A stretch of 64,000 nucleotides of DNA from Laetmonice hystrix. Its lineage: Eukaryota. The translations under genes were made by a program, and so were the position numbers. The DNA lies in NCBI GenBank assembly GCA_965235115.1, contig OZ249446.1:17236001-17300000 (forward strand), given 5' to 3'. This document shows, in pieces, positions 3,927 through 51,699 of this stretch (position 1 is the first letter of the stretch; each line of letters starts with the position of its first letter). The notes under the pieces are model-generated. The model had not been told where the DNA came from. It made no database searches and saw only the letters and a program-made list of their open reading frames with translations.

Positions 3927-6900
3927 TCACGCACTACCGGGTTCGGAGGAGAAGTTTGCTGACTGATAGGCTATTTCACCTGATTTCTTCTTGTAACACA
4001 TGACAGCCACTACCAGCAGCACAATTATTATTATGATTGCAAAAACTGCAATGGCAATTGGTGCACCTGAAGGAAAAGGAGAGAAGGAATTAATAAATGA
4101 TGATGTGAGAATTCTGTCTGAAATAACAAGTTTATACTTCAATAACATTATTTGGTTTGGGTAATGCTAGCTTGGGTCTGAGCTACAGTATTTGAAGTCA
4201 CTTTGACTGGCAGAGGACGTGGACAAAGGACCTCGACTGTTAGATTTCTGACACAAGTTACTTGAGTAGGTAAAGAACAGAAATCAAAGCTGACAAGATT
4301 AAAACAAGTTTATGACCTGTCTCACGCATCATACATTTTCAACAGCTGCATATTATACGGATTCCGAGTTATTAGAGCAAGAGAAAAAGTCACCTTTATC
4401 GATGCTGATTGCCTGAGCCTTATTCTCACAGTCAGCGAACCAGTCCCCTTCATAAACCATGGGTTTAATGACTCGGTAAAACTGGTCAAGGTCACATTCT
4501 ATTGCACAACCTGGAACAGATCATACAAAATTTGACTTTTCATTCTTTTCTCAAAATTGTCGAGGACTACTTGCATGTGACTATAAGAAGATGATACAAA
4601 AACCGTCCAAGTGATGAGACATATAAAATATACATAGCTTCCTCAGGGTACATAGGCATTTATATATATCCTGCACTACTTATACTACTTACTGTTACTG
4701 AAAAATATATCTGAGTAAATATGGTTTCTGACTTACCCCGTATACTGAGTGGTATTGGAACTGAATCCTGATTGGATGAGGAATCGTTCTTGTAGGTGAG
4801 CTTGACGAAGTAGTGGCCGGAGGGGCGCTGGTGTAGTTCAAACATTAGTGTCGAGCTATACGGTGGGAGGAGCCAGTTATAGTCGTCGAGTGCCATCATG
4901 ATGGCGGCAAGCGTCGTGTCGTGCTGGAACCAGGGGTTAAAGTCGTGGAATAAATACCTGTCTGGACAATGTACTAGTACTTCAAATGTGCGATATCTCT
5001 GCAGTGGATCTCTGATATCTCTGTGTCTGATCAGTCAGTGTTGGATACCCCTGTGTCTGATCAGTGTTAGATATCTCCGTATCTGATCAGTCAATGTTGG
5101 ATATCTCTGTGTCTGATCAACCGGTGTAGGATATCTTTGTGTCTGATCAATTCAGGTAGGATAGCTCTGTCTGATCAGTCAATGTTTGATATCTCTGTCT
5201 GATCAGTTTCTGATCTCTGTGTCTGATCTATCAGTGAAGGATACCTTTGTGTCTGCTCAGTTTATGATCTGATCGGTCAGAGTAGGATATCTCGGTCTGG
5301 TAAGATTATATCTCTGTGTCTGATCAGTCAGTGAAGGATATCTCTGTGTCTGATCAGTCAGTGAAGGATATCTCTGTGTCTGATCAGTCAGTGAAGGATA
5401 TCTCTGTGTCTGATCAGTCAGTGAAGGATATCTCTGTGTCTGATCAGTCAGTGAAGGATATCTCTGTGTCTGATCAGTCAGTGAAGGATATCTCGGTGTC
5501 TGATCAGTCAGTGAAGGATATCTCCGTGTCTGATCAGTCAGTGAAGGATATCTCCGTGTCTGATCAGTCAGTAAAGGATATCTCTGTGTCTGATCAGTCA
5601 GTGAAGGATATCTCTGTCTTCTCCGTGTCTGATCTATGAAGGATATCTTTGTGTCTGCTCAGTTTACGATATCTGTGTCTGGTCGGTCAGAGTAGGATAT
5701 CGCTATGTCTGGTAAGTTTATATCTCCGTGTCTGATCAGTCAGTGAAGGATATCTCTGTGTCTGATCAGTCAGTGAAGGATATCTCTGTGTCTGATCAGT
5801 CAGTGAAGGATATCTCTGTGTCTGATCAGTCAGTGAAGGAGATCTCTGTGTCTGATCAGTCAGTGAAGGATATCTCGGTGTCTGATCAGTCAGTGAAGGA
5901 GATCTCGGTGTCTGATCAGTCAGTGAAGGATATCTCTGTGTCTGATCAGTCAGTGAAGGATATCTCTGTGTCTGATCAGTCAGTGAAGGATATCTCCGTG
6001 TCTGATCAGTCAGTGAAGGATATCTCTGTGTCTGATCAGTCAGTGAAGGATATCGTGAAGGATATCTCTGTGTCACGCCCTTCACACTTTATAGCGCCAA
6101 CATTTAAGAGATTCTGTCACGATGCCCCCAAGCCATACCTCTCTGGTTACGACGTGGTTATATACAACTCCCACAACCCCTAACCTGTACACTTTCAGTG
6201 GCCTTATTAACGACCGTGTGCAAACGGTTTCTGACAATGATTTTTTTTCTGTGTTCTACATTTACTTTAACTTCATCATCAGTTCACTTTCGGAGTCTAT
6301 CATTCACCGTCATTATGTCATCATTTATTGTAGTAACGTATAGATGTCATTCATTCACACTGCTGTCAGATTGGTTGTGTGAAACTACAGCCTCAGTATC
6401 TCTGGCACGTTCCACAAGTCAACACTGAGTAAAAATTGATGTCATTCAGCCCGGTCAGTCAGCATACAAATGAAAACTGTAACTAATTAACAGCCAAACC
6501 TAGAACAACTCATAAGAAGGTCTGCGAGCTTTTACCGGATTAGTACTTCTACAAGACTTCCTGGTTAGTGGCATCAGTGTATCTCATAATTTGACGGATT
6601 GTCGTTTTCCCATTTTGCAACTTTTTAACAGAACACTTCACTAAGAACTTGTTACTCTTATGTTCATGCAGTGCGTGAAAAACAAATTCCACTTTGCACA
6701 TTCCAGATGTGACAAAATTCATCAAGTAGCATTGATTTTTTTTCTTCTTATTGAACAAGCAAATTTATGTTACGACGTGCGGAAGACGGTATTATACCAG
6801 CTCAAAGTTTGAATTCATTCCCATTCTATGCATAATGATCCTGCTTCAATCTGGGCGTGCGTGTATGGCCTGATCTGGACTACGGAGTGAGAATTTACTA

Positions 6901-9900
6901 CACAACAGTATATCATAGAGATGATACTGCACACAATCACACCAAATCACACAATCACACACCATATAGTTTAACATCACTTATCTCGTCATAGAGCCTG
7001 ACGACTTCCCACATCATTCAAACCCAAAGAGATCTCTTACAAATTGGTATAGAGCAGCACAACTTCCAGCTGCTACACCACAATCAAACATACACGAACT
7101 GGGAGCTTGACTTCTCCATCCCAGTCTAAAAACAGTTCATCCTCAACTGGTAAGAAGACACACTCTAGCTGCCAAGGGATGAGGTTTTATCCACTGTTTG
7201 CCACGGACGCCAGTAAGTTATTTTGATCGCCTGGTGAGAATAATTATAATTATTTACACTTAATTTAATTACCCCAAGGCCATCCCACAGAAATGTGATA
7301 ACTAACATGATTTTCCGGGGGGTTCTTTCAAAGTACATGTATATGTAAGAAATATTTTAGTCCCTAAGCACATAAATACATCCTTTTCCCTTCAAGCACT
7401 AATCTATGACGAGTGATCACACCCTTCCAGTCCTAATCAGTATGTAATATCACATGCTTTTCATTCGTTTGAAGTTAGATATGAATAATAAATTGATATA
7501 ATTTTTATTGTTAGGTGTCACGCTGCCCCACGGCTGCCACACCTCATGTTGGAGCAGGCCTACGCTCCTCCAAATTGGCAAGCCTCTCGTGTGAACGATG
7601 AAAGGAGTCCCTCATTCCTATTTACATCTTTTGTCCATTAATTAAGTCTGTTCATCCAGGGACAGCTCCTTGAGCCGATCAGTTATGCTCTCCCCTCCAG
7701 ACATTCCTCATTAGCATAGAATGTATCTATTTCATTATTCATGTTGTGTAAAAATCTGCTCCTGTCCGTTGTGCCCGGTGCCGGGGATTGCGAGTAACGG
7801 ACGCTGCCTGCCGACGTAGACATCCGGGCCTCCCATGACCCATGAACTGCCGTGGTCCCGCTGGCGTCTTCCACCGCCAGGTGGCGCCTCGCCGGTATAA
7901 GTGGTGCGTCGTCTGCAGCAGCAGGCCACAGTAGACGGCCGACCCTCCTCCCGTCAACAACAAACAACAAACAAACACAAGTCCCCTTAAAACACACCGC
8001 CATGGTCCACGTGGCCCTGACGCTCGCCACCGTTGCCATGGTGATAGGCCTGGCAGAACCAGACGGGTTAGGCTTTGACCGATTTCTGACCGCCCGAGAT
8101 TTTGATCTGGATAAAGGCAAAGATTTCAAACAGCTCAATGCAAAACCCCTGATACCCGCCAAGAGAAGTGGGTACACTAACCGTGGATATGGCGAAAGGA
8201 AAAGTACGGGATACCATGGCAGCAGAGGATATGACACCAGAAAGTCCTTGGGTGACAAGCAAGGATATGACACCAGAAAGTCCTTGGGTGACAAACAAGG
8301 ATATGATACCAGAAAGTCCTTGGGTGACAAACAAGGATATGATACCAGAAAGTCCTTGGGTGACAAACAAGGATATGATACCAGAAAGTCCTTGGGTGAC
8401 AAACAAGGATATGACACCAGAAAAACCATGGAATATGATAACAAGGGATACGATACCAGAAAGAACTTGGGATACGATAAAACCAGACATGACACCAGAA
8501 AGACGATACGGTACGATGATAACAAGGGATACGATACCAGAAAGTCCTCGGTTGATAAAGGATATGATACAAGAAAGACCATGGCATATGAAGACAAAAG
8601 GGGCTACGGCATCAGAAAGCCCCTGAACTATCATGGCGACAGAAAATATGACACTGAGAAAGACATCGAATACGACAGCAAAGCCCACGGCACAAACAAA
8701 GGTAGCAGATACGTGAATAGCAAAGAATATGACGCCAACCGACGTCCCAGAAAGTATCGATATGAACAGAGCAAGAGATATAACATGAGGAGAGCCTTAG
8801 ATGACCAAAAAAGGTATAGCAGCAAGGCATCCCGCAGTCTCAAAAAACTTGACGGGAATTTTGGCTATGGAAAAAGTGAAGGTTTGGGCTATGAAGGTAC
8901 CAAAGGATATGGACATAGCCACAGCAGTGATCCGGGATACGGGTATGATTACAACAAAGGATATGGCAGCAGCAAAGGACCTGGTTTTGATGATAGTAAA
9001 GGATATGGTTTTGTAGACAGCCACAAATATGGAGACCACAAGGGACACAGATACGATAACAGCAAAGGATACACAGCACATGGTTATGACGACTGCAAAG
9101 GATATGTGAACGGACACAGATATGAGGGAAGCAAGGAATATGATAGCAAGAAAAGACTCGGATATGGTCGCAGTGAAGGATATGTTCACAGTAAAGAACT
9201 TGGATATGGTGACAGCAAAGGATACGACAGCAGTAAAGGACCTGGATACGACGGCAGCAAGGAATATGTCAGCAGAAAAAGGCCTGGGTATGGTGACAGC
9301 AAGGGATATGATGAAAGCAAGGGATATGATGACAGCAAGGGATATGATGACAGCAAGGGATATGATGACAGCAAGGGATATGATGACAGCAAGGGATATG
9401 ATAACAGCAAGGGATATGATGACAGTAGAGACTTTCAGTATGATAACAAAGGATACACTGGTAAAGGCTTTGAATATCGCAGAAGCAAAGGACTTGGACA
9501 TGTACACAGCAAGGGATACAGCAATGGTAAAGGACTGCATGGATATGATGACAGTAAGGGATATGGAAGAAGCAAAGGACCTGCATACGCTAAAGGTGAC
9601 GGACCCCACTACGATCATGGCCCTGGCTTTAGGCACTCCGACGGACCTAGCCACAGGGTCCTTGGATACGGCCATGGCATTGCCCCAAGACGCCGTCCAG
9701 GACCTAACTACAATGACAACACCCACTTCAGTCGCAACAACGCGTTCGGTCCCCGGCACTCGTCAGGCTATGCACCAATCATTCCCAAAGTTTCCATCGG
9801 TCCCACCAGTGGATACGGTGACGAACGGGCTAAAGACGACTCAGAATACGACCATGTCAACTTCCCCCTGCCGCTTCCTAAACTACCCAGCCTCAAAGAA

Positions 9901-12900
9901 TTCCACGACGGCTCTGGATATGATCACCCTCCACGATACGACGAACACAAAACTGACGTGCAGAGTCCCCAGACAAAGGACAATGTAAGGTATGGTGACA
10001 ATGTCATCCATGTACGGATAAACCCCAAAGGGTACAGTTACACGTATGGTAACGCCAAGGACTATGGTACGTACAGACCCAGCACCCCGACCAAGGACTA
10101 CACCCCCCGGAGCCGAGGTTACCGAGCCGGTTACGAGGGTGGCAGAGATAGACCTGAGCCTCAGTATGGCCGCCAGACCTACGGTCGCTACAACAGGCAT
10201 TTCAGCTAATGGAATAAACTGCAGGTGGGCTACATTTAATTCTTTACAGGAGCCTGGCTGAATCATCTCCGTCGAAAAGAGTGAAACTTTCCAGCCAATT
10301 TCTTCAACTCTGCAGAATTGGATTAGGTATATTACCCAATGGCCCATATGGTCACGCTATATCTTGTATAACTTTCTTTGTTCAGCTTCACCATATGAGG
10401 GTCAGACCTGAAAGTGGGATAGCTGACTTAGGTAAACATAAAGTTTGATGTCGGGAGTGTGTGTGTGTGTGTGGGGGGGGGGGGGGTAATATTGAAACTT
10501 TCAATATTACCCATAATCATAATTTTCATTGACATTGTAGGAGCAAAAAGGTTTTCAAAACATAAATTATACAACATCTCAATGATTGACTCCAAACAAT
10601 ATGTCAGAGAATTCCAGCAGTTCAATCCCTTGTCAATCCATAGTCACACTCATCATCATCAAGTTTTCAATCCTGTTATGTCTTTTTTTTCTATAGAATC
10701 CACGGGACGACGGGCTGAACGACCTCAGTTTACGTGATCTTAAGGCTGAGTTTCTCCCGGTGAAACGTGACGGGCCGGGAATTTAATTCACATGCTAACT
10801 GTGCAAATAACGGATGCGAAAAGAAAAATCTTGGGCGTGGCTGTCATTAAGTGCCATGAAGTGTCACCTCCTTATACCTGAGCGTTGAAATGTCAACAAC
10901 CTTTTAATACTCATATAAGGTTAACACATCTATAACCTTCAGCACTGATACTAACTGCTGGTTTATATATTTCTTATGTATAGAGTTTATCTTTTTGCTT
11001 GAGATTCCTGGACATATCTGGAATGGGTAAAAATAGCAAGGTGATCTGATGACAACCAAGACATACATATATACATCTGATACAAATTACAGGTATATGC
11101 ATCTTTTTTTCTAATAATATATCCTTTATATCATACAGTGTATCATTTTGCTTGAGACTCCTGGATAGATGAGGACTTGGTAAAATGACATAATAATCTG
11201 ACTTACTGCCGAGTACATGTAGACTTTGATGCCCGCCGGGGCAGTCCCCCCTGCTTTATTCCGAGTTTGGTTGACTAGCAGATTAAGGAACACTCCTGGT
11301 CGAATCAGAAAAAAAAGTCCGATCGAGTTACATTTCTCAATCCGAGTTATCATTTTATTAAAATGTCTTATCCTAACATTGGGCTATCCATTCATAATGA
11401 TCTGGGTCCGGTTCACACATAAGGTCAAGTCAATTTTAATTAACCTGGAATCCATTGTAACCAGAATCAAGTAAAACTGACTTCACGTTAATTAAGATTG
11501 ACTCGACTGTTAGCCCAGCCATGTTCCGTTAGTATGGTCACTCGCACTAACTTCCCGGAAACCTTTGATATTTACATACCTACACATATACTGATCCCTA
11601 AAATGGTTTATTGAGGTCCTGTCCATTTAGTACTTGCATAACACGCAGGACCCATTTAAAACGTGAAATATTAATCGCTTGAGTAAATCTTCAGTTCCCG
11701 TCTCAAATTCTGACCATACTTTTCAAACCATTTTCCTATTGCAACGAGTCGTACCTGCCCGAATCTTTTGCATTTCCGGCGTGTAAAACCAAAGCTTTAT
11801 TTGAAAGTCCTTCAGGGCCTGCAGCCGATTAAAGACGTCCTCTGTCACCCAGTCTGGTAACGTCATGTTATGTTCTTTCTGAAGTCAAAAATCATACCAT
11901 TCAGACATTTGTACTATTTCCACCTTACCGTACACATAGTAGACCCTTGCTATGTGGACATCAAGTTTGTTTAAACTCAGTTCAACCCACTGTGTGTGGA
12001 TGAGAAGATTAATATGAACTCGTACCTCACAGAAGAGCGAGTTAGGCACTTTCTCCATCAGGTCGTATAAATCAGCATTCCGTAGCCCCGATTCTTTACG
12101 AACCATTTCGAGAAACTCCTGGAGATATATGATAAAATAACAGTCCTGTGATGGGGGGGGGTCTGGCTTTATGGCGTTCACACAATCACCCAATCACAAA
12201 AATATCGCCAGAATCCACCTGGTTCAAAACACTGATATCTTTAGCCACCGGTAACGACACAATAACACATTCTTACATTCATTATGTGAACCGTAGATTT
12301 ATACAGATGCAGTAAAACTAATGCTCTGATCCTAGCACCAACAGTCCGTCGCAGACACCTAGTGGCCTATTTGATAACTATGATCATCCTATGCTGTAGC
12401 AGAGGAACTGATGTCTATAAATAGCACATCGACCGTTATGATGGCCAGCCTATCGCACAATGCTGAAGGACGACACTGTCGCTTTAAATACCGGTACTCA
12501 TGTTCAATATGCAAAGTGAAATCATTTGAATAATATGTATTCTAATTTTAAACACATAACAACTATAAAGATGGCAACATGGAAATGAAAACAAAATAGT
12601 CTACTGTGATGAATATGCAGAGGCAGAAAGCCAAGGAAGTTTGACAGGAAGAGCATGCACTTACAGCCTAACAGGAAGTAGAAATGTTAAGCCAAGCAGG
12701 TCCTGGCCATTCTAAGGCATGATAAGGAACAAGTAAGCTGAATTAATGTTTTTCCCCCAGTCCAAATCTGCAATGCACGTATCTGGTGTCCTAAATGTAG
12801 GCACTAATCTGTCCGTGACGAGGAGACCATTTCAATAAACGTCAGTTAATGTGCTCATAGGGGGACGCTTTCATTAATTACTTAGACGATGTTGAGGGAA

Positions 12901-15900
12901 CGTTTCAATACATACCGTGAAAACGTAAGGGACAGTTTCAAAAACACTATTCAGTGTGGTACTCTCGAGTCAGAGGAATGACGTTCAACTCATTTTCTAC
13001 GTCACTTTGTCTTCTCTGGGTAGACCATATTAACTACAAATGTATGACGTAATAACTTTGTCTTCTCTGGGTAGACCACATTAACTACAAATGTATGACG
13101 TAATAACTTTGTCTTCTCTGGGTAGACCATATTAACTACAAATGTATGACGTAATAACTTTGTCTTCTCTGGGTAGACCACATTAACTACAAATGTATGA
13201 CGTAGTAACTGTATACACCTTCAGATATACATGTCTGCATGATATCCACGTAACGGTCAGGGTTTTTCTCGGGTGGAAGGCAATAAAATACCAAAGAGTG
13301 CAAAAGGCTGGTTGGAGGCCAATGGGGTAAGGTCTGGCTGGTATCCTAGCAACTAGGTATGTGAGCTGACCAAGGAGCCGTCAATCAAATCCAAATTCTA
13401 ACCGCAAAACTGGGATTGTTTGGACCCATAAATTCGACCAAAACTATTCTATTTAGTCTTAGGGTTCATTCAATACAGGGATGTGTTTCACATATACAAA
13501 AATTTCCCTGGCAATTTTTAGTGAATAAAACTTTCTCACAGGAGATATAATATGCGAAAATTCAAGCAATTCATACAACATGCGAGACAAAAGCACATAT
13601 ATCGGAGCTCCTCACTGGCCCCTTTCATAGTCTTTAACTGTTAGCTACACACACCGACACATTTCTCAACACATTTGATCCAGAATTTTTCCAAGAAAGC
13701 AAGGGATGCCATCTACAAATCTCCCACAACCACTGACATAAGACGTCTGGCCGCAGAGACTGGTATATTGGTTACCTTATTGTTTTCCTCGTAGGTTAGC
13801 GTTTCGTTAGATTGGTACACCTCGTCCAACAACACTGTGTACGTGGGGCAGACGGTGTCGGTGTAACTCAACAGCTACGGGTGACAGAACAGACTAAAGT
13901 CAACCCCGAGCATACTGCATCGGAAACACCTTTCTAGATACAAGTACAAATAGCTGGTCGCTGCAGCCGTCCGACCTGAAAATCATTCCGAACCTCGCCC
14001 GATTCATACAGTTGGCAGGAATCTGTGGTTTGGCCTTGGATTTTGGATTGGGGTTTTACGCAGAGAAAACAGGGTGCACGACTATGACGAATGGATCCAG
14101 AGAAAGGGGGTTGGGTGAGAGATATTTAACTTCTCACACAATGATTAATCGTACCGCAGTCAATGAGACTGTCTCCAAAAATAAAAATATATTTAACTAC
14201 CCCAACATCTTGAGCTTGCTTCAAAGTAATTTTGATAATTTCTTAGAATAGTTATCCTTCGACTCCCCGCCCGTCTCCCTCTCAAACTCTGGATCTGTCT
14301 CTTGACTAAAACCAGCTCTATCACGGCAAACAAACCAACATTTCACACATAAAGTCATCGGCCAGGCAAGGGGGCCTGGTAGTGCTGGCCATTGCCACCA
14401 GAGGGCAGCATCAAACGGTGTACCTTGTTGTCAGCTTCATATTCCTGGACCTCAGGGGAAGTAAAGGCTGCCTGCATCCAGGGAAAGTACTTCTGGCACG
14501 GGGTTCCTGCTCTCAACAACTTCAGGCAACAAATCCGGGTTAGACCCTCTTAATATGTCATCATATAAAATCATTCCATATATTTTTATTTCGTTCGAGC
14601 ATACATTCCCAAACATAACTTTCATAAAAAATACCGGTACAAATATCATGACAGACTCCACATGAACTCCTTATCAAACGGGGTTTCATGTACATACTTA
14701 AATAAACGCCCATATATCTAATTAACTGCGTTCGCTTTTTTTTAGCTCGGAGATCACCCAAAAATTTCTTCAATTTGAGAGATTTTGCACCTTTCCAGGT
14801 GTCATCCAACAGAACCCATCAATTCTAATAATGCTCACGCGTTTATTAAAGTAAATATGGTATTCATAAAAAGGTCTTCTGACAACTAGAAGAAAATTAA
14901 TCAAGACATCACAGTCCATCCCGACGACAGACATAACTAACACAGGAACGCCTTTTAGTTTTCTCTCATGAATGAATTATTAAAAGACGGTGACCACCAA
15001 ATCCAACTAATGCACAAAATCTTAGCAGTAACAATTACGTTACCTGAAGCTTTTTACCTCTTTACAATTACCTTTTTATGATCTAAACTATTCATCATCA
15101 CCAGTCACAGTCCGGACATAACCGGCGCCGCCTAGCGGTGAGATGTAGAACTTACGTTGTCAGTGGCATAAACCACGGTGTGTATAGGTATGGGCTGCCA
15201 CCTGACGGCAGGGTTCCACAACTGGTGACCTCGCGGGGGGTAGAGGCCAGCCAGGACGGAGGACGCGCTCATCAGCGTCCGGTCATTATCTGTGCTCCGG
15301 ACGTAGACCTAACAGGGTCAATATGGAGGTCACGTCAGGGGTCTACTACAGCCTACCAACCAAACTTTAACCAGAACCATATTAATACCGGGCCTTTGAC
15401 ATAATACTAAGGTTCTCTCCCTCTGAAAATAAAGGTTTCTAATACAGGTACAGGATAAATACTATGGGGATAATAAAAAAGAATTCTTCGATTTTTAAGA
15501 GAAGTTATTTTTTGCCATATTTCCCAAATTACATCCTGTGAAGCAGAAGGTTACCAAAACAACAAAAAGAAATTTGCTATCTTTCCATCTCTGAAACTTT
15601 CCACTCACCTCTTGTCTGATGTAGGTCTCATTGAGAAAACCATTATAATGTTTGCGCAGGTATTTCCCTAAGTCATACTCCTGCTGCATTCCAATCTGTA
15701 AGAAACGTGATCTATCAAATTCTGGCCACCATTTAGACGGATTATTACCTCAACAAAAACACACACAAATATATACCTGAGCAGGAACAGCACTCGTCCC
15801 GAGAAGGTGCTAGGGCATTTTTTTTTGGACTACAGATGAAATCCACTTATTTACTGACAGATTGTTAAATTTATTGTTCGACAAAAAAGATATTGGTATC

Positions 15901-18900
15901 CAAAGATAAGACTGACCTGTGTCAGCTGACCGAATCCTTGGGGCCAGGCACTCTCCTGGTGGGGATCTGTGGGAAATGTTTGCGTTGGACTTCGATCACC
16001 ATGGCGAAATACCTGAAACATAAGAAAATCATGCATTTAAGCAGGTATTCCAAATGACAAGGAGAAAATACTTTGATAGCTTGCCGTTTCTTATAATATC
16101 CAATCATAGTCAGAGGGAAAACAGCCTCAGAGATACAATTTTAGCTTTCATCCGATCCCTTAGGGCAAGACTCTGGTCAGTTACAATGAGTTACAATGAG
16201 TAAGGGTAACGATATTACATGAGAAGATGCCTATTTCGGCCCAACTCTTATCTCAAACCGAGGGTTGCCTGGGTCCCAACATCTTAATAAAGACCTTTCA
16301 ATAACTTCCGATCCTATTCCAACATAATATTTACATCCCAAAAGACAATGCCTAAAGCCTCCCTGATTACTCAGACGGGGAGAGCCCTGACTTGGTCCAC
16401 CCCTGACCCATAACTTCACATCGGCTGGCTAGTCCATGTGTCAGAGTTATACACTTGGCGACAGTAAGTGAGTAACCTCCCCTGCCATCCGGGATCTATC
16501 GAGTCGTGTGGTGGGGTGGGAGGTGGAGTCCTGAATATCTATATCTGGTGAACAGGTGTTCCCTACAAGTATCTGCACTCAGGATGAGTGGAGCTGACAA
16601 TGAACCCAGCAGATCTCACGTCTCTGGTATGGCTGGCGCTAGTAGCAGAATAAAGGAAGCTATGTACATTGAATACACATACTGTGGCCAGAGTGGGGCA
16701 CTGTATGACTCGAACTACCGCCGTACATATCTAACAATATAACAGCGGAGTCCTCCCTGATACCAGCATGTACATCACTGAAAGTTATTATTGTATTATA
16801 ATGTATAATACAATGAGTAACGTTAACAATACCCAGCAACCAATGATATGACCTCACAGAGGAACGGATGGGATAGGGGGTAGGATGGAGGTCTATAGAG
16901 AGGGTGGGGGAGTGAGGGATGGAGGTCTATAGAGAGGGTGGGGGAGTGAGGGATGGAGGTCTATAGAGAGGGTGGGGGAGTGAGGGATGGAGGTCTATAG
17001 AGAGGGTGGGGAGTGGGGGATGGAGGTTTATAGAGAGGGTGGGGGAGTGAGGGATGGAGGTCTATAGAGAGGGTGGGGGAGTGAGAGATGGAGGTCTAGA
17101 GAGAGGGTGGGGGAGTGAGGGATGGAGGTCTATAGAGAGGGTGGGGGAGTGAGGGATGGAGGTCTAGAGAGAGGGTGGGGGAGTGAGGGATGGAGGTCTA
17201 TAGAGAGGGCGGGGAGTGAGGGATGGAGGTCTATAGAGAGGGTGCCGGGGGAGTGAGGGATGGAGGTCTATAGAGGGTGGGGAGTGAGGGATGGAGGTCT
17301 ATAGAGAGGGTGGGGGAGTGAGGGATGGAGGTCTATAGAGGGTGGGGGAGTGAGGGATGGAGGTCTATAGAGAGGGTGGGGGAGTGAGGGATGGAGGTCT
17401 ATAGAGAGGGTGGGGGAGTGAGGGATGGAGGTCTATAGAGAGGGTGGGGGAGTGAGGGATGGAGGTCTATAGAGAGGGTGGGGGAGTGAGGGATGAAGGT
17501 CTATAGGGAGGGTGGGGGAGTGAGGGATGGAGGTCTATAGAGGGTGGGGAGTGAGGGATGGAGGTCTATAGAGAGGGTGGGGGAGTGAGGGATGGAGGTC
17601 TATAGAGAGGGTGGGGGAGTGAGGGATGGAGGTCTATAGAGAGGGTGGGGGAGTGAGGGATGGAGGTCTATAGAGAGGGTGGGGGAGTGAGGGATGGAGG
17701 TCTATAGAGAGGGTGGGGGAGTGAGGGATGGAGGTCTATAGAGAGGGTGGGGGAGTGAGGGATGGAGGAGGTCTATAGAGAGGGTGGGGGAGTGAGAGAT
17801 GGAGGTCTATAGAGAGGGTGGGGAGTGGGGGATGGAGGTCTATAGAGAGGGTGGGGGAGTGAGGCATGGAGGTCTATAGAGAGGGTGGGGGAGTGGGGGA
17901 TGGAGGTCTATAGAGAGGGTGGGGGAGTGAGGGATGAAGGTCTATAGGGAGGGTGGGGGAGTGAGGGATGGAGGTCTATAGAGGGTGGGGAGTGAGGGAT
18001 GGAGGTCTATAGAGAGGGTGGGGGAGTGAGGGATGGAGGTCTATAGAGAGGGTGGGGGAGTGGGGGATGGAGGTCTATAGAGAGGGTGGGGGAGTGAGGC
18101 ATGGAGGTCTATAGAGAGGGTGGGGTAGTGAGGGATGGAGGTCTATAGAGAGGGTGGGGGGGTGAGGGATGGAGGTCTATAGAGAGGGTGGGGGAGTTAG
18201 GGATGGAGGTCTATAGAGAGGGTGGGGGAGTGAGGGATGGAGGTCTATAGAGAGGGTGGGGGAGTGAGGGATGAAGGTCTATAGGGAGGGTGGGGGAGTG
18301 AGGGATGGAGGTCTATAGAGAGGGTGGGGGAGTGAGGGATGGAGGTCTATAGAGAGGGTGGGGGAGTGAGGGATGGAGGAGGTCTATAGAGAGGGTGGGG
18401 GAGTGAGAGATGGAGGTCTATAGAGAGGGTGGGGGAGTGAGAGATGGAGGAGGTCTATAGAGAGGGCTGGGGCTGAAAGATGGCAGAGCGCCGTAGCTCA
18501 AGGAAGGGGCGACCCCAGTTTGATTGACAAACCCAGTTTGACTGACAAATCCATAGGAAGTGATGATCCCGATGGTGTATGGTACTCGTTGGTAGGATGG
18601 ATGATTGGGATCCTTGGGGTGCCGGGGCAGTAGATGGGGTCGGGGTGGGGTGTCAGAGGCCCGTGTGACGGGGCCAGGAGCTGGGTTAGTAGGCGTCACC
18701 CCTGCCTGGTAGAGCAGTGAACCCCTGTGGGGTGGGGAGGCAGGGTTTCACTTCCTCCGGTACCCACTGCCACACCTGCCAAGAATCCCGACCGACTGCC
18801 GACCGCTATGACTCACCTCTCGCTACGACAGCCACACCCTCTACTACTGACAACTCCCGTTTTCAAACGACCTCAAATAAATTTACAAATTTAAAGTTGA

Positions 18901-25517: not shown

Positions 25518-27997
25518 CTAAGGTCGACAGTGGACGAGTGGTGGGGCGGTGGGTTCGGGACCACTGGTGCTGGCAAACACAACCGTTTTGTGTGGCCCCT
25601 CATTCTCTTTGTCTATGCTGGATTCTCTTTTTCCACTGGATACTTTGAGTTGGACCGCAGGCGACTGGGACGGGCTTCGGTTTACGAGCATTCGACGAGC
25701 ATTCAGAAATGCTGGCGACGTCATCGCAGAGTACTTGGTGAAAATCTGCTTCATTGGAACATCAAACTCCAGAACAAGGTCAAGAGCAGTCTTTCCCTCT
25801 TTGTTTTTGCTTGTGATATCAGCCCTGGCTAGAATGAGCATCTCCACCACGTGGTGAAACTGGTTTTTGGCGGCAAAATGCAATGCCGTATCACCTTGCG
25901 AGTTGTGCTGGTTCACCTTGACTTGTTTCTTCAGGAAAAGGTCGACCATCATGTCGTAATCATCCTTTTTGCGCATGCTTCTATGATCGTGTTTGTGCAA
26001 GAGGACACAGTGTAGAGCCGTTTGGTCGTCGGAATCCAGGACATTGACGCTAGCCCCGAATCTGTCCAGCAGGAAGCGAACCGTCTCGATGAGTCCTCGC
26101 TCTGCCGCCAGGTGGAGGGCAGTCTTCTCCTTGCCGTCTTCAGTGCACGGAACTTTGATGTTGACGTCAACGTAGCGCGAGAAAATGTCAATCAACGGCA
26201 CGTGACCCTCTAGGGCGGCGATGTGCAAGGGACTGGGGCCTTTCTGACCTTCATGGAAGATTGATGCGCTATGCTCCAGCAGAATCCGCACAAGTTCCAC
26301 ATGGCCGTACTTGGTGGCGAGTTGCAATGGGGACAGGCCGTCCTGGTCCAACCGATTCACATTGGCGCCACGGAATAGCAACATCCGCGCCGAAACGTAG
26401 TCCGCTTTCTTGACGGCAATGTGAAGCGCCGACCTGTTGTGATGGTCAAGCCGGTTGACGTCTGCGTTGTTGTCTAGCAAGAGGCAGACTGTGTCCGGTA
26501 GGCCGTTCTTGACGGCAACGTGTAAAGGACTGACATGAGTTTGTTTTCCCGGTGTCGGAGACTCTGTCAGGAAGTTCGCCTGGGCGCCGTTGTCCAGCAT
26601 GTACTTGAGAATGGACGTGTCCTTGAGCCTGCTCGCCTCAAGTATTGCTGTCTCGATTTCCCTGCCCAGTTTCTCGCCAAGGTCGTTGATGTTGAGGAGG
26701 GCTTTGTCCTTACGCTTTAGCCGGGTTTCAATGATGGCGCGGACATCACGGGGGTTGTTGTCCCGGACAGCCTGGATTAAGTCGGCAACATGTCGAGCGT
26801 CTCTAGGCATGTCGGATCGGTGGCTCTCTGCCGGCAAGATTCTGAAAACATAGAAAAAAATGGAGTGTTTCAAAACCAGAGTCTTAAAATAGAAAGGGCG
26901 TTCCTGGATGACGAAGCTTTGGCCACTGTGTGCAGAATTGGTATAGGCATTATGGAATATACCTAACAAATAGCATCACTGTTACCATCACTATAAAAAC
27001 AGGTCGGCCTATAGCCTATACACAGGTAGATCTACACGTAAATATATGACCTTGATAGTCTCTGGGTTGATTCGTTATTAGTTGTCACTGACTCCGAATG
27101 GGTCCATGAGGAACATTTGAAAAACTAGTCTAGTTGGAATTAAACGCAGGAACCCATTCTGACAAGGCTCAAAACACACTTGGCCTACGGTTTTATCACA
27201 TTGCATGTATATCGCGGATCCAGGTTAGGGGGGTTAAACCTCCCAATGGATAGCTTGAGACATTGCCATAGAATTTTAACCCCCCTCTCAACACGTCGAA
27301 ATACAAAACCTGCATTGATCTGGCCCCTTCCAACCTAACCACACCTCAACTTTACATCAGAGGACGTACCGTACAGTGGGATCCTCTCTATAACATAGAT
27401 TTCTCACATTCACTGGCCTTGAGAAGATGACCTTTGATTTGGGACGCTGGTTAATTGATACCAGGCCCTGCCCTCCCATTTATACCAGGCTCCGACCTCT
27501 CATATTGCTGGACTCAAGGTGCTCCAACCTTCAACTTGTTGGGCCTACAATCTCTCGCATTGTAGGCAGTACATTTCCTCTAGTAAAACTCAGAGGGGAT
27601 TTATATAGGTAGGCAGCCAGCATATGGCCGGTAGGGTTGATATCCTGTCTCAGCTCGTCCCTCCTCTGTGTCGTCTTTATGTAAAGCATGCAGAGCCAGA
27701 CACAAGTAGCAGTTTTCGGGTGGAGTCCCCACCCTGGAGTCGCCGGGTACGTTCGGGTGGCCGTCTGGTACAGAATCACGCGGAGTGGCTATAGCCATCA
27801 CTCAGGGGAGTTGGCGACGGACCGCTCCTCTGTACTCTTGTGTCCACCATAACACACCAACCGGCGACCCCTGCACACAGCAAGATGCTGGTACTCATCC
27901 CAGGCCCGTCCATCCTGTACATACTCTGACCACAACTCATTCTTTACCTGCTCTTCTGGAACCGGCCGAAGAACCCGCTCAGTTTCGACCGCTTCAT
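25518..27997 (-). CDS. Ankyrin-repeat protein (about 7-8 ANK repeats), about 457 aa
   Basis: Main exon 26841-25518 follows the acceptor TTTCTATGTTTTCAG and encodes SPLHVAVKNG, SALHIAVKKA, SPLQLATKYG, SPLHIAALEG, TALHLAAERG, TALHCVL, TALHFAAKNQ and KTALDL. A candidate first coding exon, 27997-27948 (MKRSKLSGFFGRFQKSR, donor AG|GTAAAG, phase 2), joins in frame but is less certain. The alternative start is the ATG at 26810. Confidence 0.85.
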
Positions 27998-35882: not shown

Positions 35883-38823
35883 TCAGTTTCGCAGTTTCGC
35901 AGACAGTAGTCCAATCGCAGCAGCACCGACAACAGTCCCAAGCCAAATCTTCCAACTGCTACTGCGGACATCTTCAGTGTGTCTGAAGAATTCCAGAAAA
36001 TCATCCTGGAACAAAAAAGGAAAATTTCATATTATGATTACTTACTAACCAATAAATGGCACAAGATTTACCACTTTACAATTATTATTATTTTTTTACT
36101 AACAGCCGTCTGATCCCTCATTGGCCATGAATTGAATTTTTTAGTAGACAGACACTTAAAATTATTTTTTCAATTTTTACTAAACATTCATTACACTTAT
36201 ATTCGAAGACCATACTTATATACCAGTCAAAGTCAATTAGTAACAATTTCGACTGTCACGGGGGCATAGACTACAGTTAGCCATTAAGTGTAAAGTCCTA
36301 GAACCTGTGAAGATAATTTGCCTCGGTCAAATGTTGTTTTTTTCGTAACTTCACCTTTAACAAGCAAAGTATTAGACTATTACATAAATTTGAAAGTGTT
36401 CTCTTCGTCTCTGTTTAAAAATATAATACATGTACATGTAGTTGTTTTTAATAGTAAAAGTACAACCCTGACATGACAACATGATCTTGTATTCAGACCC
36501 AAGCGCCACATGTAAGGAACCCCTTGCTATCCGCCTTAATGGTCATGCATAGTGACTACCGGCGGTTTGTTACACAGCTGGGTCACTAAGTACTGTTGTT
36601 TGCTGTAGCCAGGATCACAGACAGCTACCAGTGGGGCAAACCACAGGAAATGTTTGCTTAACCTAATTCTCCAATTGTACAAAATCTGACAGTTCAGTGA
36701 CTATATTAAAGCAATATATTTCCTCACTTGTCCCCTCATCTGCCATTAATGCTGAATTAGAGGACTTATATAATACGCATTCCTGAATGATTCTATCACA
36801 GGGATGTTGACACAGCTAAGATGGAGCTTGAGTAGGCGTTACAGAAATAAACTGGTCTTGGCATAGGTTATAATACGGACCTTCCTGTTAAAATGAACTA
36901 TCTTATACACTGCCCAGGATATGAAAGTCTGACACAAAATGTCTACTGCTGTGTGAGACTGTGACCAATATTCTCATTCTATGTCACATCATTAACAAAT
37001 TTCAAACTGATGTATGACAAATGTCTTTAGTTTTTCCCCCCCAGGCTCAGTCCAATGTTTTGTTTAATGTGATCCAAGATGCCAACAGTTGTACTCATTC
37101 TTGCCATGATTCTTGCAAAGCTCTGTTCTAATAATAACATCTCACATCTGTCATTGAGGAGTCACATGAAGATCACAGTATAGGTTCGTGAAATTTGCAG
37201 TTTAAAAACACTTTTCCAAACTCTCGCCATGCCTCGTTGACCACAATTCCCAACCACATCTTCCAAGTTTCATCATGTCCCCAGCATTCCACAAAATTAT
37301 CCTAGAAAATAAAAAGAAAAAAAAAACTTGAAAAAGAAGGCAAATATAGGCGTAGGAATGCACATTCCACATTCCGGCTGCACCCAATTTTTTTTACCCT
37401 AGGAGGAGGTGATGATGACACCTGCATCTGGACACTAGGACAGCTACTTTTTACACTATGGCCAGGCTGGCCTGGCGCAGCATCTAACCGACCTGTTTCA
37501 GGATGTTACCACCAATCGAGAACCCTACTACAAAACCATTATAATATTATGAGATTTTATTATTCATAATATTATGAGATTTTATTATTCATAATTTTAA
37601 GTAAATCCTTTATCTGTCAAGAACTAGTTGTCATCTCAGGTGTCAGGACCCGTTTCACTAAGCTGGCGACATCATAAATGTCGTCTGGTGCGGCCAACGT
37701 TAAAGCAGTGGAGGACGTCGCCAGAACGGGTACCGTAACATTTTACCTTATATGGGCCGGCCATGTCGCCGGCTTAGTGAAACGGGGCCCAAGTATCCAC
37801 CATACTTACCCAGCCACCTTCACTCTCGATCCATTCTTTCAGCTCCTCTTCGATGTAGCTACCAAGGAAATCAGCAATATCCTTGGTCAATCCTTTCATT
37901 CCCTTCTTGGCGCTACCCTTTGCAAGCGACGCACAGAAAGCATACACTGCAACAACTCGCCCCCAGTTTGGTGGTGGATGAGCCTTCAAAACCTCATCCA
38001 AAATGTTTCGTAGCGTCATGAAGCCATTTATCTCCTCAACTTTAATGAAATTCAAACAACTCTCAAAAAATTCCATGTGGTTCTTAGTCACTTCTGTGAC
38101 CTTCAAGCGCATTGTTGCTTCATATTGTGAGCTGGGGGCAGGAGCATTTTCTTCACCCAAAGCAATATAGTTTACAATATCATGGGCAAGGGATCTGGCA
38201 ATAAATCCGCTGTTTTTATCAACCGATGTCTGTGGCACATTAGATGCTCTTGCACTATCGATATCGTCAATATTTCGGAACTGTTCAACCATTCGGACAA
38301 CATCACGTTCACTGAGCCCTGCTTTTTCCATCGCTTTTTGCAGGTGTTGAAATCGTCCCTCATCTTTGTCAACGACGACATTGGGTCCCGCCTTGTTCTG
38401 ATCTTCTTTCACTTTCTTCAGCTCGCCTTCATAATCCTTCAATACTTTGTGTTGCAGCCACAGTTGGTTTTGGAGAACTTCAAGTTTGGTCGAGTAATCC
38501 AGCTCGTCGTAGCCTTGAGGTTCCTCACTACTCTGGACATCAGGAACAGACTCAGGGTCAGTCTCACGGATTCGCTTTTCTAACCAATCGTAGTCCTCCA
38601 ACAGCGCCTTGCAAAACGACTCAAACGACTGTTTTTTCACCAATATTTTCATTAGTTTTCGCATGGCCTCTTGTTTCGTCAAGTGGATCAGAGTGACACT
38701 GTCCATTTCGTCATCAGTCACCATACCATCCTCGTACAGTTGGTCGATCACACACTTCACGTTCACAATCTGTATAATCTCTTTGCAGTTGCCCCGCAGC
38801 TTTTTTTTGGCTACCTCATCCAT
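35883..38823 (-). CDS. CARD + coiled-coil + Bcl-2-family fusion protein, membrane-anchored isoform (378 aa)
   Basis: Exon 38823-37810 (338 codons) encodes an Apaf-1-like CARD (MDEVAKKKL...VIDQLYEDGMVTDDE...LMKILVKKQSFESFCKALLEDYDWL), a coiled coil, BH4-like SLAHDIVNY, BH1 NWGRVVAVYAF and BH2 WIESEGGW. It ends at the family-typical phase-0 intron (TGG|GTAAGT). Last exon 36005-35883 encodes DDFLEFFRHTEDVRSSSWKIWLGTVVGAAAIGLLSAKLRN*, which completes BH2 and adds a tail anchor. A likely 5'UTR intron is at 38919-38837. Confidence 0.92.
37173..37301 (-). CDS. Paralogous alternative terminal exon of the CARD-Bcl-2 gene, without a hydrophobic anchor
   Basis: Polypyrimidine acceptor ending TTCTAG, phase 0, encoding DNFVECWGHDETWKMWLGIVVNEAWREFGKVFLNCKFHEPIL*. 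It shares D.F.E...H and WK.WLG.VV with the distal exon. ATTAAA lies about 100 nt downstream. Usage is unproven. Confidence 0.6.
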   Translation of the reverse strand, partial: DNFVECWGHDETWKMWLGIVVNEAWREFGKVFLNCKFHEPIL

Positions 38824-38947
38824 TTTCTTCAAAGGACTGCACACTTTATATTTAACTAAAGTGTAAACTATCGTCGATTTGTGCTGTGTAATGCTGTGGC
38901 ATTTGATTTCCGTGCTCACCTCCGTCCAACATTATCTTTCAGAATAC

Positions 38948-49412: not shown

Positions 49413-49834
49413 CGGGCGCGAATCCAGGATTTCTTGAAGAGTGGGGTTCAGGGACTTTTCAAAGGGCACCTACCTACAAAACAGGCACGGATACAGCACT
49501 GCAACGGGGAGACGCCCTCAAGCGCCAAAGGCTGAGGCGGACATCTGCAGGGAAGGGCCTGGACACCTCCCCCAGAACATTTTTGAATTTAGAAGGCAAA
49601 AAAACCCCCGCTATTTCCTGGCATCTGGAGATAGAAATTGTGGCAGAATGCGAAAATTTCTCAAAACATTTAGGCCTAGCCTACCAATAATTTTGTCACT
49701 TCTTCAAAAAAGGAGAGCGTGCGCCCCTGCACCCGCCCCCTTTGATTCGCGCCTGCAAAGGTTAGCCAAGAAGGGCACTTTGGAGCCCAAGGGGGGTCCA
49801 ACCCCCGACTCCCCCCCCCCCCGATCCGCGCCTG
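49413..49834. mobile_element. hAT-like MITE with an imperfect 6-bp TSD
   Basis: TIRs CGGGCGCGAATC and GATCCGCGCCTG. Flanks TGTCAC and TATCAC. Confidence 0.65.
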
Positions 49835-49923
49835 TATCACGAAATGAATCGTTAACCCTTTCCAGGCCCCCTATTATTTTGCAATATCTAATTAATTATA
49901 CTTATTAATTATACTGACACAAA

Positions 49924-50980
49924 TATATTTGGTTTATTTGTGGCAATGTTTGCCCGAGTTCTGCCAGCACCACTGCTTGTGTTGTGTCTGTGTCTACAGT
50001 TATATTTGGTTTATTTGTGGCAATGTTTGCCCGAGTTCTACCAGCACCACTGCTTGTGTTGTGCCTGTGTCTACAGTTATATTTGGTTTATTTGTGGCAA
50101 TGTTTGCCCGAGTTCTGCCAGCACCACTGCTTGTGTTGTGCCTGTGTCTACAGTTATATGGCGGTCTATTTGTGGCAATGTTTGCCCGAGTTCTGCCAGC
50201 ACCACTGCTTGTGTTGTGTCTGTGTCTACAGTTATATTTGGTTTATTTGTGGCAATGTTTGCCCGAGTTCTCCCAGCACCACTGCTTGTGTTGTGCCTGT
50301 GTCTACAGTTATATTTGGTTTATTTGTGGCAATGTTTGCCCGAGTTCTGCCAGCACCACTGCTTGTGTTGTGCCTGTGTCTACAGTTATATGGCGGTCTA
50401 TTTGTGGCAATGTTTGCCCGAGTTCTACCAGCACCACTACTTGTGTTGTGCCTGTGTCTACAGTTATATTTGGTTTATTTGTGGCAATGTTTGCCCGAGT
50501 TCTGCCAGCACCACTGCTTATGTTGTGCCTGTGTCTACAGTTATATTTGGTTTATTTGTGGCAATGTTTGCCCGAGTTCTGCCAGCACCACTGCTTATGT
50601 TGTGCCTGTGTCTACAGTTATATTTGGTTTATTTGTGGCAATGTTTGCCCGAGTTCTGCCAGCACCACTGCTTGTGTTGTGCCTGTGTCTACAGTTATAT
50701 TTGGTTTATTTGTGGCAATGTTTGCCCGAGTTCTGCCAGCACCACTGCTTGTGTTGTGCCTGTGTCTACAGTTATATTTGGTTTATTTGTGGCAATGTTT
50801 GCCCGAGTTCTGCCAGCACCACTGCTTGTGTTGTGCCTGTGTCTACAGTTATATTTGGTGTATTTGTGGCAATGTTTGCCCGAGTTCTGCCAGCACCACT
50901 GCTTGTGTTGTGCCTGTGTCTACAGTTATATGGCGGTCTATTTGTGGCAATATTTGCCCGAGCTCTGCCAGCACCACTTT
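49924..50980. repeat. 77/78-bp minisatellite, about 13.5 copies
   Basis: Unit TTATATTTGGTTTATTTGTGGCAATGTTTGCCCGAGTTCTGCCAGCACCACTGCTTGTGTTGTGCCTGTGTCTACAG. A 78-bp GGCGGTCTA variant occurs at about 50160, 50392 and 50932. Confidence 0.97.
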
Positions 50981-51699
50981 TAATACTTAGGCCCCTTACC
51001 TAATATAGACTACATACTTCTAATCATGTTAACTAGTTTTCTTGCTGAATTGACGTAAACGGCAATGTAAAAGATTATACACTGCGACACGGGCCGACCC
51101 GATGTCACACCATCCATAGGCCTATCAAATCTACGTAAGCGTATAGCTAAAATCGCCACGTGTGTGACCGGTTTAACATTGAAAGTAAGCCGTGTGTAGA
51201 CCTCTATGATGCCCTGGACAGACGGTGGGAGTTCCACTGACTTGTATTAGAATTAAACTTCCTGGTTGTCGCTGACCCCTGGAGGAGACAGACTCTAGCC
51301 TACCTATATATAGGCCTACACCTGCCTGAATCTTCCCACAGATCATAGCGACCGTTTCACATGACATTGGATTGTAGCTATCCGTAAATATTAGAGGCAT
51401 TTAGGTCCCAACCGTGACTGCCAAAACTTCGTTATAATCATTTCTTGCTAGAGAACCTTTCTGTATACTTTGAAGTATTACATAAAGTGACAGCTCATGG
51501 CTCATAGTGACTTACATCACACGTGGCTCTGAGCCATCCTCGTCTGACTGCATGCTCCAGTTAACCGCCACAGATCTAGGCCCTATGCCAACCGTTAACT
51601 GTGAGGACACATTTCTTCCTTGTCTGTGGTTCATCCGCGAGTTGAGATCACGGTTTGTTTGAAATAGTATGGAAAGGTACGAGTAGGGCATACCATATC

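Follow-up and report, generated by a model that had tools for sequence, protein, structure and literature searches.

Within a 64,000-nucleotide stretch of the genome of the annelid Laetmonice hystrix (NCBI GenBank assembly GCA_965235115.1, contig OZ249446.1, positions 17,236,001 to 17,300,000 of the forward strand; this whole stretch is called the window below and its first letter is position 1) we found a single open reading frame (ORF) at 8002-10209 on the + strand, which consists of 735 codons plus a TAA stop, is free of introns and is most probably a real, transcribed gene. It appears to be a single-copy gene with a promoter and a poly(A) signal of its own, antisense to a histidine acid phosphatase gene whose intron contains it, and in its product tyrosine recurs with a strict periodicity. 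Judged from composition only, this product could well be a lineage-restricted, secreted and cross-linkable precursor of a matrix or an adhesive, a reading that we put forward tentatively.

Counted from the preceding stop the frame is open for 785 codons. The 735 amino acids translated from 8002-10206 include 108 G (14.7%), 82 Y (11.1%), 82 D (11.1%), 79 K (10.7%), 64 S (8.7%), 61 R (8.3%) and 29 H (3.9%), together with a lone C which is itself polymorphic, since the other chromosome copy encodes Ser at Cys365. A sequence-only reading of the same DNA had described about 80 Tyr (about 11%) with many of them as GY, a single Cys, His-rich patches and two repeat classes, and all of this agrees with our counts and with the translation: 48 of the 82 Tyr are part of a GY, the only Cys is replaced by Ser in the second haplotype, the His patches are present and the repeats are built from a 12-residue and a 6-residue unit. 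Besides the 48 GY there are 34 YD dipeptides and 23 GYD tripeptides. Looking at the neighbours of the 82 Tyr, G is found at -1 in 48 cases, K at -2 in 27 and D at +1 in 34, giving the preferred context K(-2) G(-1) Y D(+1), and the commonest distances from one Tyr to the next are 6 (24 times) and 8 residues (16 times). The proposed near-balance of Asp with Lys/Arg was correct for Asp against Lys but not for the protein as a whole, as K and R add up to 140 residues vs 105 for D and E, resulting in a net charge of +35 and an isoelectric point (pI) of 9.41.

Almost the entire protein can be written as a chain of Tyr-centred units of 5-13 residues with the pattern (G/E/R/K)-Y-(D/G/E)-x-(S/T/R)-K (Table 1). 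Near-perfect tandem repeats account for only about 15% of the ORF and the remainder is degenerate or unique. According to Tandem Repeats Finder (TRF) the 36-bp array runs into degenerate 39- and 72-bp continuations that reach approximately 8591, and periods of 42 and 84 are found at 9130-9312 ahead of the 18-bp array, whose GYDDSK units are embedded in a series of about 35 degenerate x-Y-(D/G)-x-S-K units. At 8407-8800 the 12-residue unit continues as derivatives with 66-87% matches and 4-9% indels, and the reading frame is nevertheless intact.

Whether such a frame is a gene or has arisen by chance is a relevant question here, as minisatellites abound in this genome and produce open frames of 600-800 codons. 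The ORF could accordingly be an old and partly decayed intronic minisatellite complex, T-poor and hence stop-poor, with the RNA described below coming from a non-coding transcript or from the pre-mRNA of the host gene. In line with this idea the region is T-poor (AT skew 0.34), two further frames are open for 288-320 codons, and the inspected matches elsewhere in the genome are all minisatellites of exactly this type. We nevertheless consider a non-coding origin unlikely. In 1000 dinucleotide-preserving shuffles, which retain the T-poor composition, the longest open frame had a mean length of 152 codons and never exceeded 305, compared to the 735 observed. Over the span of the ORF there are no stops in its own frame but 5, 14, 18, 22 and 92 in the other five, whereas a true minisatellite has several open frames or, after decay, none. 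A neutral control is provided by the same intron, where a 30-bp minisatellite at 5014-6054 (35 copies, 81% matches) shows 14-32 stops in every frame and no open run longer than 133 codons in any of them. In the ORF, the degenerate repeats (66-87% matches, 2-9% indels) and the repeat-free C-terminus all stay in frame, so that a large degenerate or unique part is open as well. The five copies of the 36-bp unit vary at only two sites, both of them synonymous third positions.

Four sequencing runs of a single sample contain the stretch; three of these show even cover and heterozygosity and are DNA, and the fourth (X4) is RNA-like. Among the heterozygous differences in the DNA runs 19 listed single-nucleotide polymorphisms (SNPs) fall into the ORF. 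No stop and no indel was seen on the second chromosome copy in the contig-covered parts of the ORF, all three listed indels being located outside.

The signals flanking the frame also argue against decayed non-coding DNA, as a TATA-like element, a start context, a leader and an AATAAA coincide with its two ends. No ATG is found between the TATA-like element and position 8002, where the start codon stands in a good context (gccATGg), and together these signals define a putative compact and intron-free transcription unit reaching from approximately 7925 to approximately 10235. The signal peptide proposed by the sequence-only reading is supported by hydropathy, from which a hydrophobic 18-residue leader is predicted at the first ATG; it has a mean Kyte-Doolittle value of 2.15 over the 18 residues and small residues at -3 and -1. 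No further hydrophobic segment was found in the product, the best later 19-residue window scoring 0.18. That the leader is false and the product an intracellular low-complexity protein takes up only a small remainder of the probability.

RNA evidence comes from X4. One of its contigs joins the host exon 11207-11306 to sequences on either side that are identical to 4894-4923 and 11766-11795, and thus X4 contains spliced mRNA of the acid phosphatase gene. Over the ORF the X4 cover amounts to about 700 nt, is confined to the last 900 nt and ceases at the ORF end; no cover was found in 6300-9206 and in 10233-10694. As the cover ends together with the ORF and its poly(A) signal and is missing from the adjoining intron, it is not a general intronic pre-mRNA signal, which is a further point against a non-coding origin. 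At the low-coordinate edge of this cover there is no T-run, which would be a sign of oligo-dT internal priming on the host strand, and the cover fits a + strand poly(A) RNA ending at the AATAAA. A second X4 block runs from 10695 to beyond 11400 over host intron and exon at about half the exon depth, and its start coincides exactly with an A8 run that the genome carries on the host strand. This block probably reflects internal priming, unspliced host RNA or an acid phosphatase isoform with an intronic poly(A) site. Neither block reaches further than about 0.7-0.9 kb from an A-rich 3' end, suggesting that the library is strongly 3'-biased.

Two splice-like sites were seen in the same region. A consensus-like 5' splice site (G|GTACGT) is located inside the ORF at 10066-10073, where an X4 contig ends and the depth falls from 13 to 3, and a strong acceptor-like site on the + strand (a T-rich tract followed by AG) lies at 10695-10696, at the same edge as the second X4 block. 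A splice from the donor at 10067/10068 to the acceptor-like site at 10696, considered because of the contig end at 10067, was dropped since no joint or loose end was reported and since the X4 cover from 10695 onwards is better accounted for by internal priming or by read-through of host pre-mRNA. An alternative 3' splice of the ORF transcript at 10066-10073 is possible but unsupported, no joint having been reported.

In order to find relatives of the product we searched several libraries. A word-indexed protein search with the full-length product gave no match at E <= 0.001, and an exhaustive phmmer search against 1.84 billion cluster representatives gave 43 matches (best E = 1e-42), all of them confined to the repeat regions. 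These were rejected as relatives, as the 16 of the 43 that were inspected are unrelated proteins with 12- or 6-residue repeats of their own, among them bacterial methyltransferases (repeat KPYGEKKSFGD) and GTPase-like proteins (repeat SHDTKEGVVQAQ), and their alignments are limited to query residues 43-215 or 351-514. The unique N- and C-terminal parts, which the sequence-only reading had singled out for such a check, had no match in the 1.84 billion representatives, and no identity with a characterised protein was found. Pfam, searched up to E <= 10 with the whole protein and with both unique ends, returned only Galanin at E = 0.16, far below the cut-off. In the embedding atlas the best value was 0.78, to arthropod low-complexity clusters named 'keratin-like' or 'hornerin-like', which is below the useful threshold. 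A literature search on the repeat motifs and on the composition of polychaete tube proteins gave nothing relevant. Within the own genome the full-length query gave 49 matches, which we rejected as paralogues because every locus inspected is a minisatellite open in several frames; no paralogue was found there, the unique N- and C-terminal parts being single copy, and an origin as a retrocopy was rejected as well since no parent gene was found.

As the product itself is missing from the searched libraries, it appears to be unannotated. These results point to a gene that is lineage-restricted or evolves very fast, and unannotated orthologues in related genomes are still conceivable. They also agree with the earlier statement that the protein is lineage-specific and its units unknown from any named protein, as no true relative is found among the 1.84 billion proteins, in Pfam or in the atlas. 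Going by its sequence, the protein belongs to no named family and would at most work like the eggshell, cement or foot proteins with which it is compared below.

The predicted mature protein has a mass of about 81.5 kDa, a pI of 9.41 and a grand average of hydropathy (GRAVY) of -1.64, with one residue in three being charged (fraction 0.34). The 'coacervate-like charge patterning' that the sequence-only reading had deduced does not withstand calculation: the charge segregation kappa is 0.13 compared to 0.18 +/- 0.017 for shuffled sequences, which means that the charges are mixed more evenly than at random, and just one 40-residue window (residues 441-480) is net acidic beyond -0.1. The segregated blocks of opposite charge and the high kappa which characterise a self-coacervating blocky polyampholyte were thus not found, and the product is a net-basic, well-mixed polyampholyte. 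AlphaFold2 without an alignment gave a mean predicted local distance difference test score (pLDDT) of 38 and no fold, with helices only in the leader (residues 5-13) and, weakly, at residues 256-273, so the product is predicted to be intrinsically disordered. At this pLDDT matches from a fold search would be meaningless.

The likeliest of the roles considered for a protein with these properties is the following. After secretion, Tyr would be exposed about every 6-8 residues in short units of the K-G-Y-D-x-S-K type with Lys or His nearby, and the protein would be the precursor from which a structural or adhesive material is made outside the cells, for example a tube lining or cement, a cuticle or chaetal matrix, or an egg envelope. 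Curing could proceed by two routes: a tyrosinase would turn Tyr into 3,4-dihydroxyphenylalanine (DOPA) and further into the quinone, which couples with Lys or His or binds metals, or dityrosine would be made by a peroxidase. In both cases the secreted protein would end up as an insoluble network. Regularly exposed Tyr, Gly flanks that provide flexibility, nearby Lys and His and scarce Cys seem to be features common to Tyr-cured secreted proteins, and with its content of Tyr, Gly, Lys and Asp and its single Cys the product is similar in composition to precursors tanned by DOPA or quinone. Secretion, tyrosine modification, cross-linking, tissue and material are all parts of this scheme that we infer.

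The same gene evidence would equally suit a secreted disordered protein that is not cross-linked oxidatively, for example a hydrated polyampholyte of mucus or egg jelly, a Tyr-sulfated protein or a matrix component binding minerals or metals. The Tyr residues are often followed by Asp (34 of the 82) and preceded by Gly, and thus stand in an acidic and turn-rich context. Such a context favours sulfation and Lys or Arg near Tyr disfavours it; here nearly every Tyr has Lys or Arg no more than two to five residues away. With 11% Asp and its His patches the protein could bind Ca or metals, but its net charge is basic, which sets it apart from Asp-rich mineral-binding proteins. From the well-mixed charges a soluble and expanded chain is predicted, and the modest expression in the single RNA-like run as well as the few tyrosinase genes of this genome (see below) also suit a protein without oxidative curing. 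On the other hand, the strict Tyr periodicity in combination with Lys and His is a hallmark of cross-linkable precursors, and we therefore regard a non-cross-linked product as a less likely, though still serious, alternative.

A multi-copy precursor of neuropeptides or hormones, from which short peptides are freed at basic sites behind a signal peptide, would also explain the signal-like leader, the five identical 12-residue units with an R-K in each and the presence of 28 dibasic pairs (KR 6, RR 5, RK 15, KK 2). This explanation is very improbable. With 735 residues the protein is far longer than typical precursors, the dibasic pairs are mostly R-K and lie inside the 12-residue units without a preceding Gly for amidation, and the hexapeptide half is monobasic (Lys) with highly degenerate units. 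It is the spacing of Tyr that is conserved and not a peptide core, and the Galanin match mentioned above is far below the cut-off.

Among known systems the cement proteins of sabellariid worms (sandcastle and honeycomb worms) come from the same phylum. In Pc-1 and Pc-2, two basic proteins of this cement with Gly-rich repeats, part of the Tyr is present as DOPA, which serves for bonding and quinone curing (PMC12621633, PMC9999432). Like the ORF product, Pc-1/Pc-2 and Sa-1/Sa-2 are annelid, basic and composed of short Gly/Tyr/Lys(/His) repeats without a recognised domain, and secretion is predicted here; the predicted leader, the pI of 9.41 and the two repeat classes give the product the character of a secreted, basic Gly/Tyr/Lys-repeat protein as in this cement. 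The sabellariid proteins are only about 230 residues long compared to 735 here, and their cement combines separate coacervating polycations and polyanions, whereas in the ORF product 14% acidic residues are interleaved evenly with the basic ones. The exhaustive phmmer search of the 1.84 billion representatives showed no similarity to the Pc/Sa proteins, whose presence in that library is not confirmed.

The nearest match in composition are the eggshell (vitelline) precursors of trematodes, which are rich in Gly, Asp and Lys. They contain about 12-15% Tyr and no Cys, and their DOPA is cross-linked to Lys/His via tyrosinase or acts through chelation of iron or other metals (PMC11727788). The 11.1% Tyr and the single Cys of the ORF product (Ser in the other haplotype) come close to this, which is a compositional likeness only. 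Trematode eggshell proteins are about 29 kDa in size, belong to another phylum and have a conserved eggshell synthesis domain; this domain is absent from the ORF product (Pfam, E up to 10), and no sequence similarity to these proteins was seen in the exhaustive search.

Mussel foot proteins (MFPs), such as MFP-1 with its decapeptide repeats and MFP-5, resemble the product in being basic, disordered, rich in Tyr, Lys and Gly, often tandemly repeated and secreted, the latter being predicted here. Much of their Tyr is turned into DOPA, which reaches up to 30 mol% in MFP-5 (PMC9999432). They share no homology with the ORF product, which is far larger than MFP-3 or MFP-5, and they are Asp-poor with Tyr placed beside Lys or Pro instead of the K-G-Y-D found here. 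Resilin-type elastomers are cured by di- and trityrosine made by peroxidase (PMC9999432). Resilin, too, is disordered and secreted (again predicted here) with short Gly-rich repeats holding one Tyr each, but it is an arthropod protein with a chitin-binding domain and weakly charged Pro/Ser/Gly-rich repeats, compared to one third charged residues in the ORF product, in which Pfam finds no chitin-binding (R&R) domain.

Several observations weigh against a secreted and Tyr-cured structural protein encoded by a real gene. X4 is one small, strandless run that covers only about 30% of the ORF, all of it in the 3' part, and the 5' 1.2 kb have no RNA cover; a transcript beginning near 9300 would contain no in-frame ATG, and a presumed 3' bias of the library could account for the missing 5' part. 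The k-mer depth in X4 is 3-18 over the ORF vs 31.7 at the host exon, contig depth being a poor measure, and such a low depth is not as expected of a dominant structural protein. The leader has no basic n-region. Codon use is A-rich (AGA, GAA, GGA) and unlike that of the two neighbouring single-exon ORFs. The search for orthologues in the libraries and for paralogues in the own genome was empty. Within the ORF the SNPs are 7 synonymous to 12 non-synonymous, which is a weak and non-significant synonymous excess (P = 0.074), and their density equals that of the flanks. Because of this weak excess the present-day constraint on single residues is low. Low residue constraint is usual for repetitive structural proteins. 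The near-neutral SNP pattern, the lack of RNA over the 5' 1.2 kb, the atypical codon use and the lack of a homologue in the libraries searched also speak for the non-coding minisatellite complex discussed above.

The set of tyrosinase genes counts on both sides. Matches to the tyrosinase domain (PF00264) above the cut-off were found at about four genome loci, all on one contig (C2), and the enzyme class needed for the DOPA route is therefore available in the same animal, which speaks for a Tyr-cured product. The number of loci speaks against it, being at the level of the non-cementing annelids Capitella (3) and Riftia (3), without an expansion as in the cement-making Sabellaria (28; PMC11667028), and some annelids such as Alvinella have no tyrosinase at all (PMC12403961). 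As the count is at the level of non-cementing worms, a cement of the sandcastle-worm type is not specifically indicated. The loci on this contig lie at 18.48 Mb, 45.95 Mb and 52.94-52.96 Mb, with two or three matches within 20 kb at the last position, which may form a small tandem cluster.

Table 1. Features of the Tyr-rich ORF and its surroundings (positions in the window; TRF, Tandem Repeats Finder; o/e, observed/expected).
Feature	Position	Strand	Basis or detail
Host intron of the histidine acid phosphatase gene, with the ORF inside on the opposite strand	4924-11206 (6.3 kb)	-	Borders from X4 spliced contig
GC-rich patch, putative core promoter region (inference only)	7801-8000	+	GC 0.61, CpG o/e 0.95 vs GC 0.35-0.45 in the surrounding intron
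TATA-like element TATAAG, 106 nt upstream of the ATG	7896-7901	+	Only TATA-like hexamer on the + strand in 7500-8100
Predicted signal peptide, residues 1-18	8002-8055	+	Hydropathy; likely cleavage after G-L-A, before E-P
Five tandem 36-bp units encoding identical 12-residue peptides	8227-8406	+	TRF 8226-8423, period 36, 5.5 copies, 98% matches
Degenerate derivatives of the 12-residue unit (Y-D-x-x-K/R, 5-13 residues), basic	8407-8800	+	TRF periods 39 and 72
Degenerate hexapeptide-type units (G/E/R/K)-Y-(D/G/E)-x-S-K and His patches	8863-9285	+	Unit layout
18-bp array of GYDDSK and close variants, 8 units	9286-9429	+	TRF 9289-9425, period 18, 7.6 copies, 95% matches
X4 contigs over the ORF	9319-9366 and 9546-10200	Unreadable from contigs	0 differences, k-mer depth 3-18
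C-terminal 199 residues without tandem repeats, Pro/His/Tyr/Arg-rich	9610-10206	+	TRF: no repeat; single copy in the genome
AATAAA polyadenylation signal, 4 nt past the TAA	10213-10218	+	Only AATAAA/ATTAAA on the + strand in 7500-10700

The exons of the host gene match Pfam His_Phos_2 colinearly, among them the exon with RHGDRSP (15854-16036) and the one with HDTT, whose end is at 4923; a transmembrane-type exon follows at 3930-4166. Just upstream of its first recognisable exon a G-rich 34-bp minisatellite with 46.8 copies and 94% matches is located at 16883-18472, which accounts for the extreme GC skew (0.56) of 16001-18000. Another tandem repeat region at 49441-51003 is open for about 340-350 codons in each of the three + frames with Cys/Leu/Val-rich translations and looks like a further minisatellite rather than a gene. 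The window also holds two long single-exon ORFs on the - strand, which according to Pfam encode a 483-residue ankyrin-repeat protein (25518-26969) and a fusion of CARD and Bcl-2 (37774-38919).

In summary the ORF is at present no more than a candidate orphan gene, which is unannotated and partly supported by RNA. Low-complexity secreted proteins of this kind are common in marine invertebrates, and two of its traits look mildly unusual, namely the acidic-plus-basic K-G-Y-D context and the nested intron-free gene seemingly grown from in-frame minisatellites. A more far-reaching idea, which we offer as speculation and consider rather improbable, is that of a recently born orphan gene, in which in-frame growth and decay of minisatellites in the intron of a housekeeping gene would have created a complete unit from promoter to poly(A) signal that encodes a new K-G-Y-D class of annelid biomaterial. 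Its chemistry, in that improbable case, would be unlike that of the purely cationic DOPA proteins of mussels and sandcastle worms, with acidic as well as basic residues flanking every cross-linkable Tyr. If the protein is indeed made and cured through its Tyr, it would be an annelid structural protein of the DOPA or dityrosine type with an unusual interleaving of Asp and Lys around each Tyr in an 82-kDa chain, which would make it relevant to designers of bio-inspired adhesives and hydrogels. In addition it would provide a clear example of a lineage-restricted gene that has originated from in-frame tandem repeats and is nested antisense in the intron of its host.

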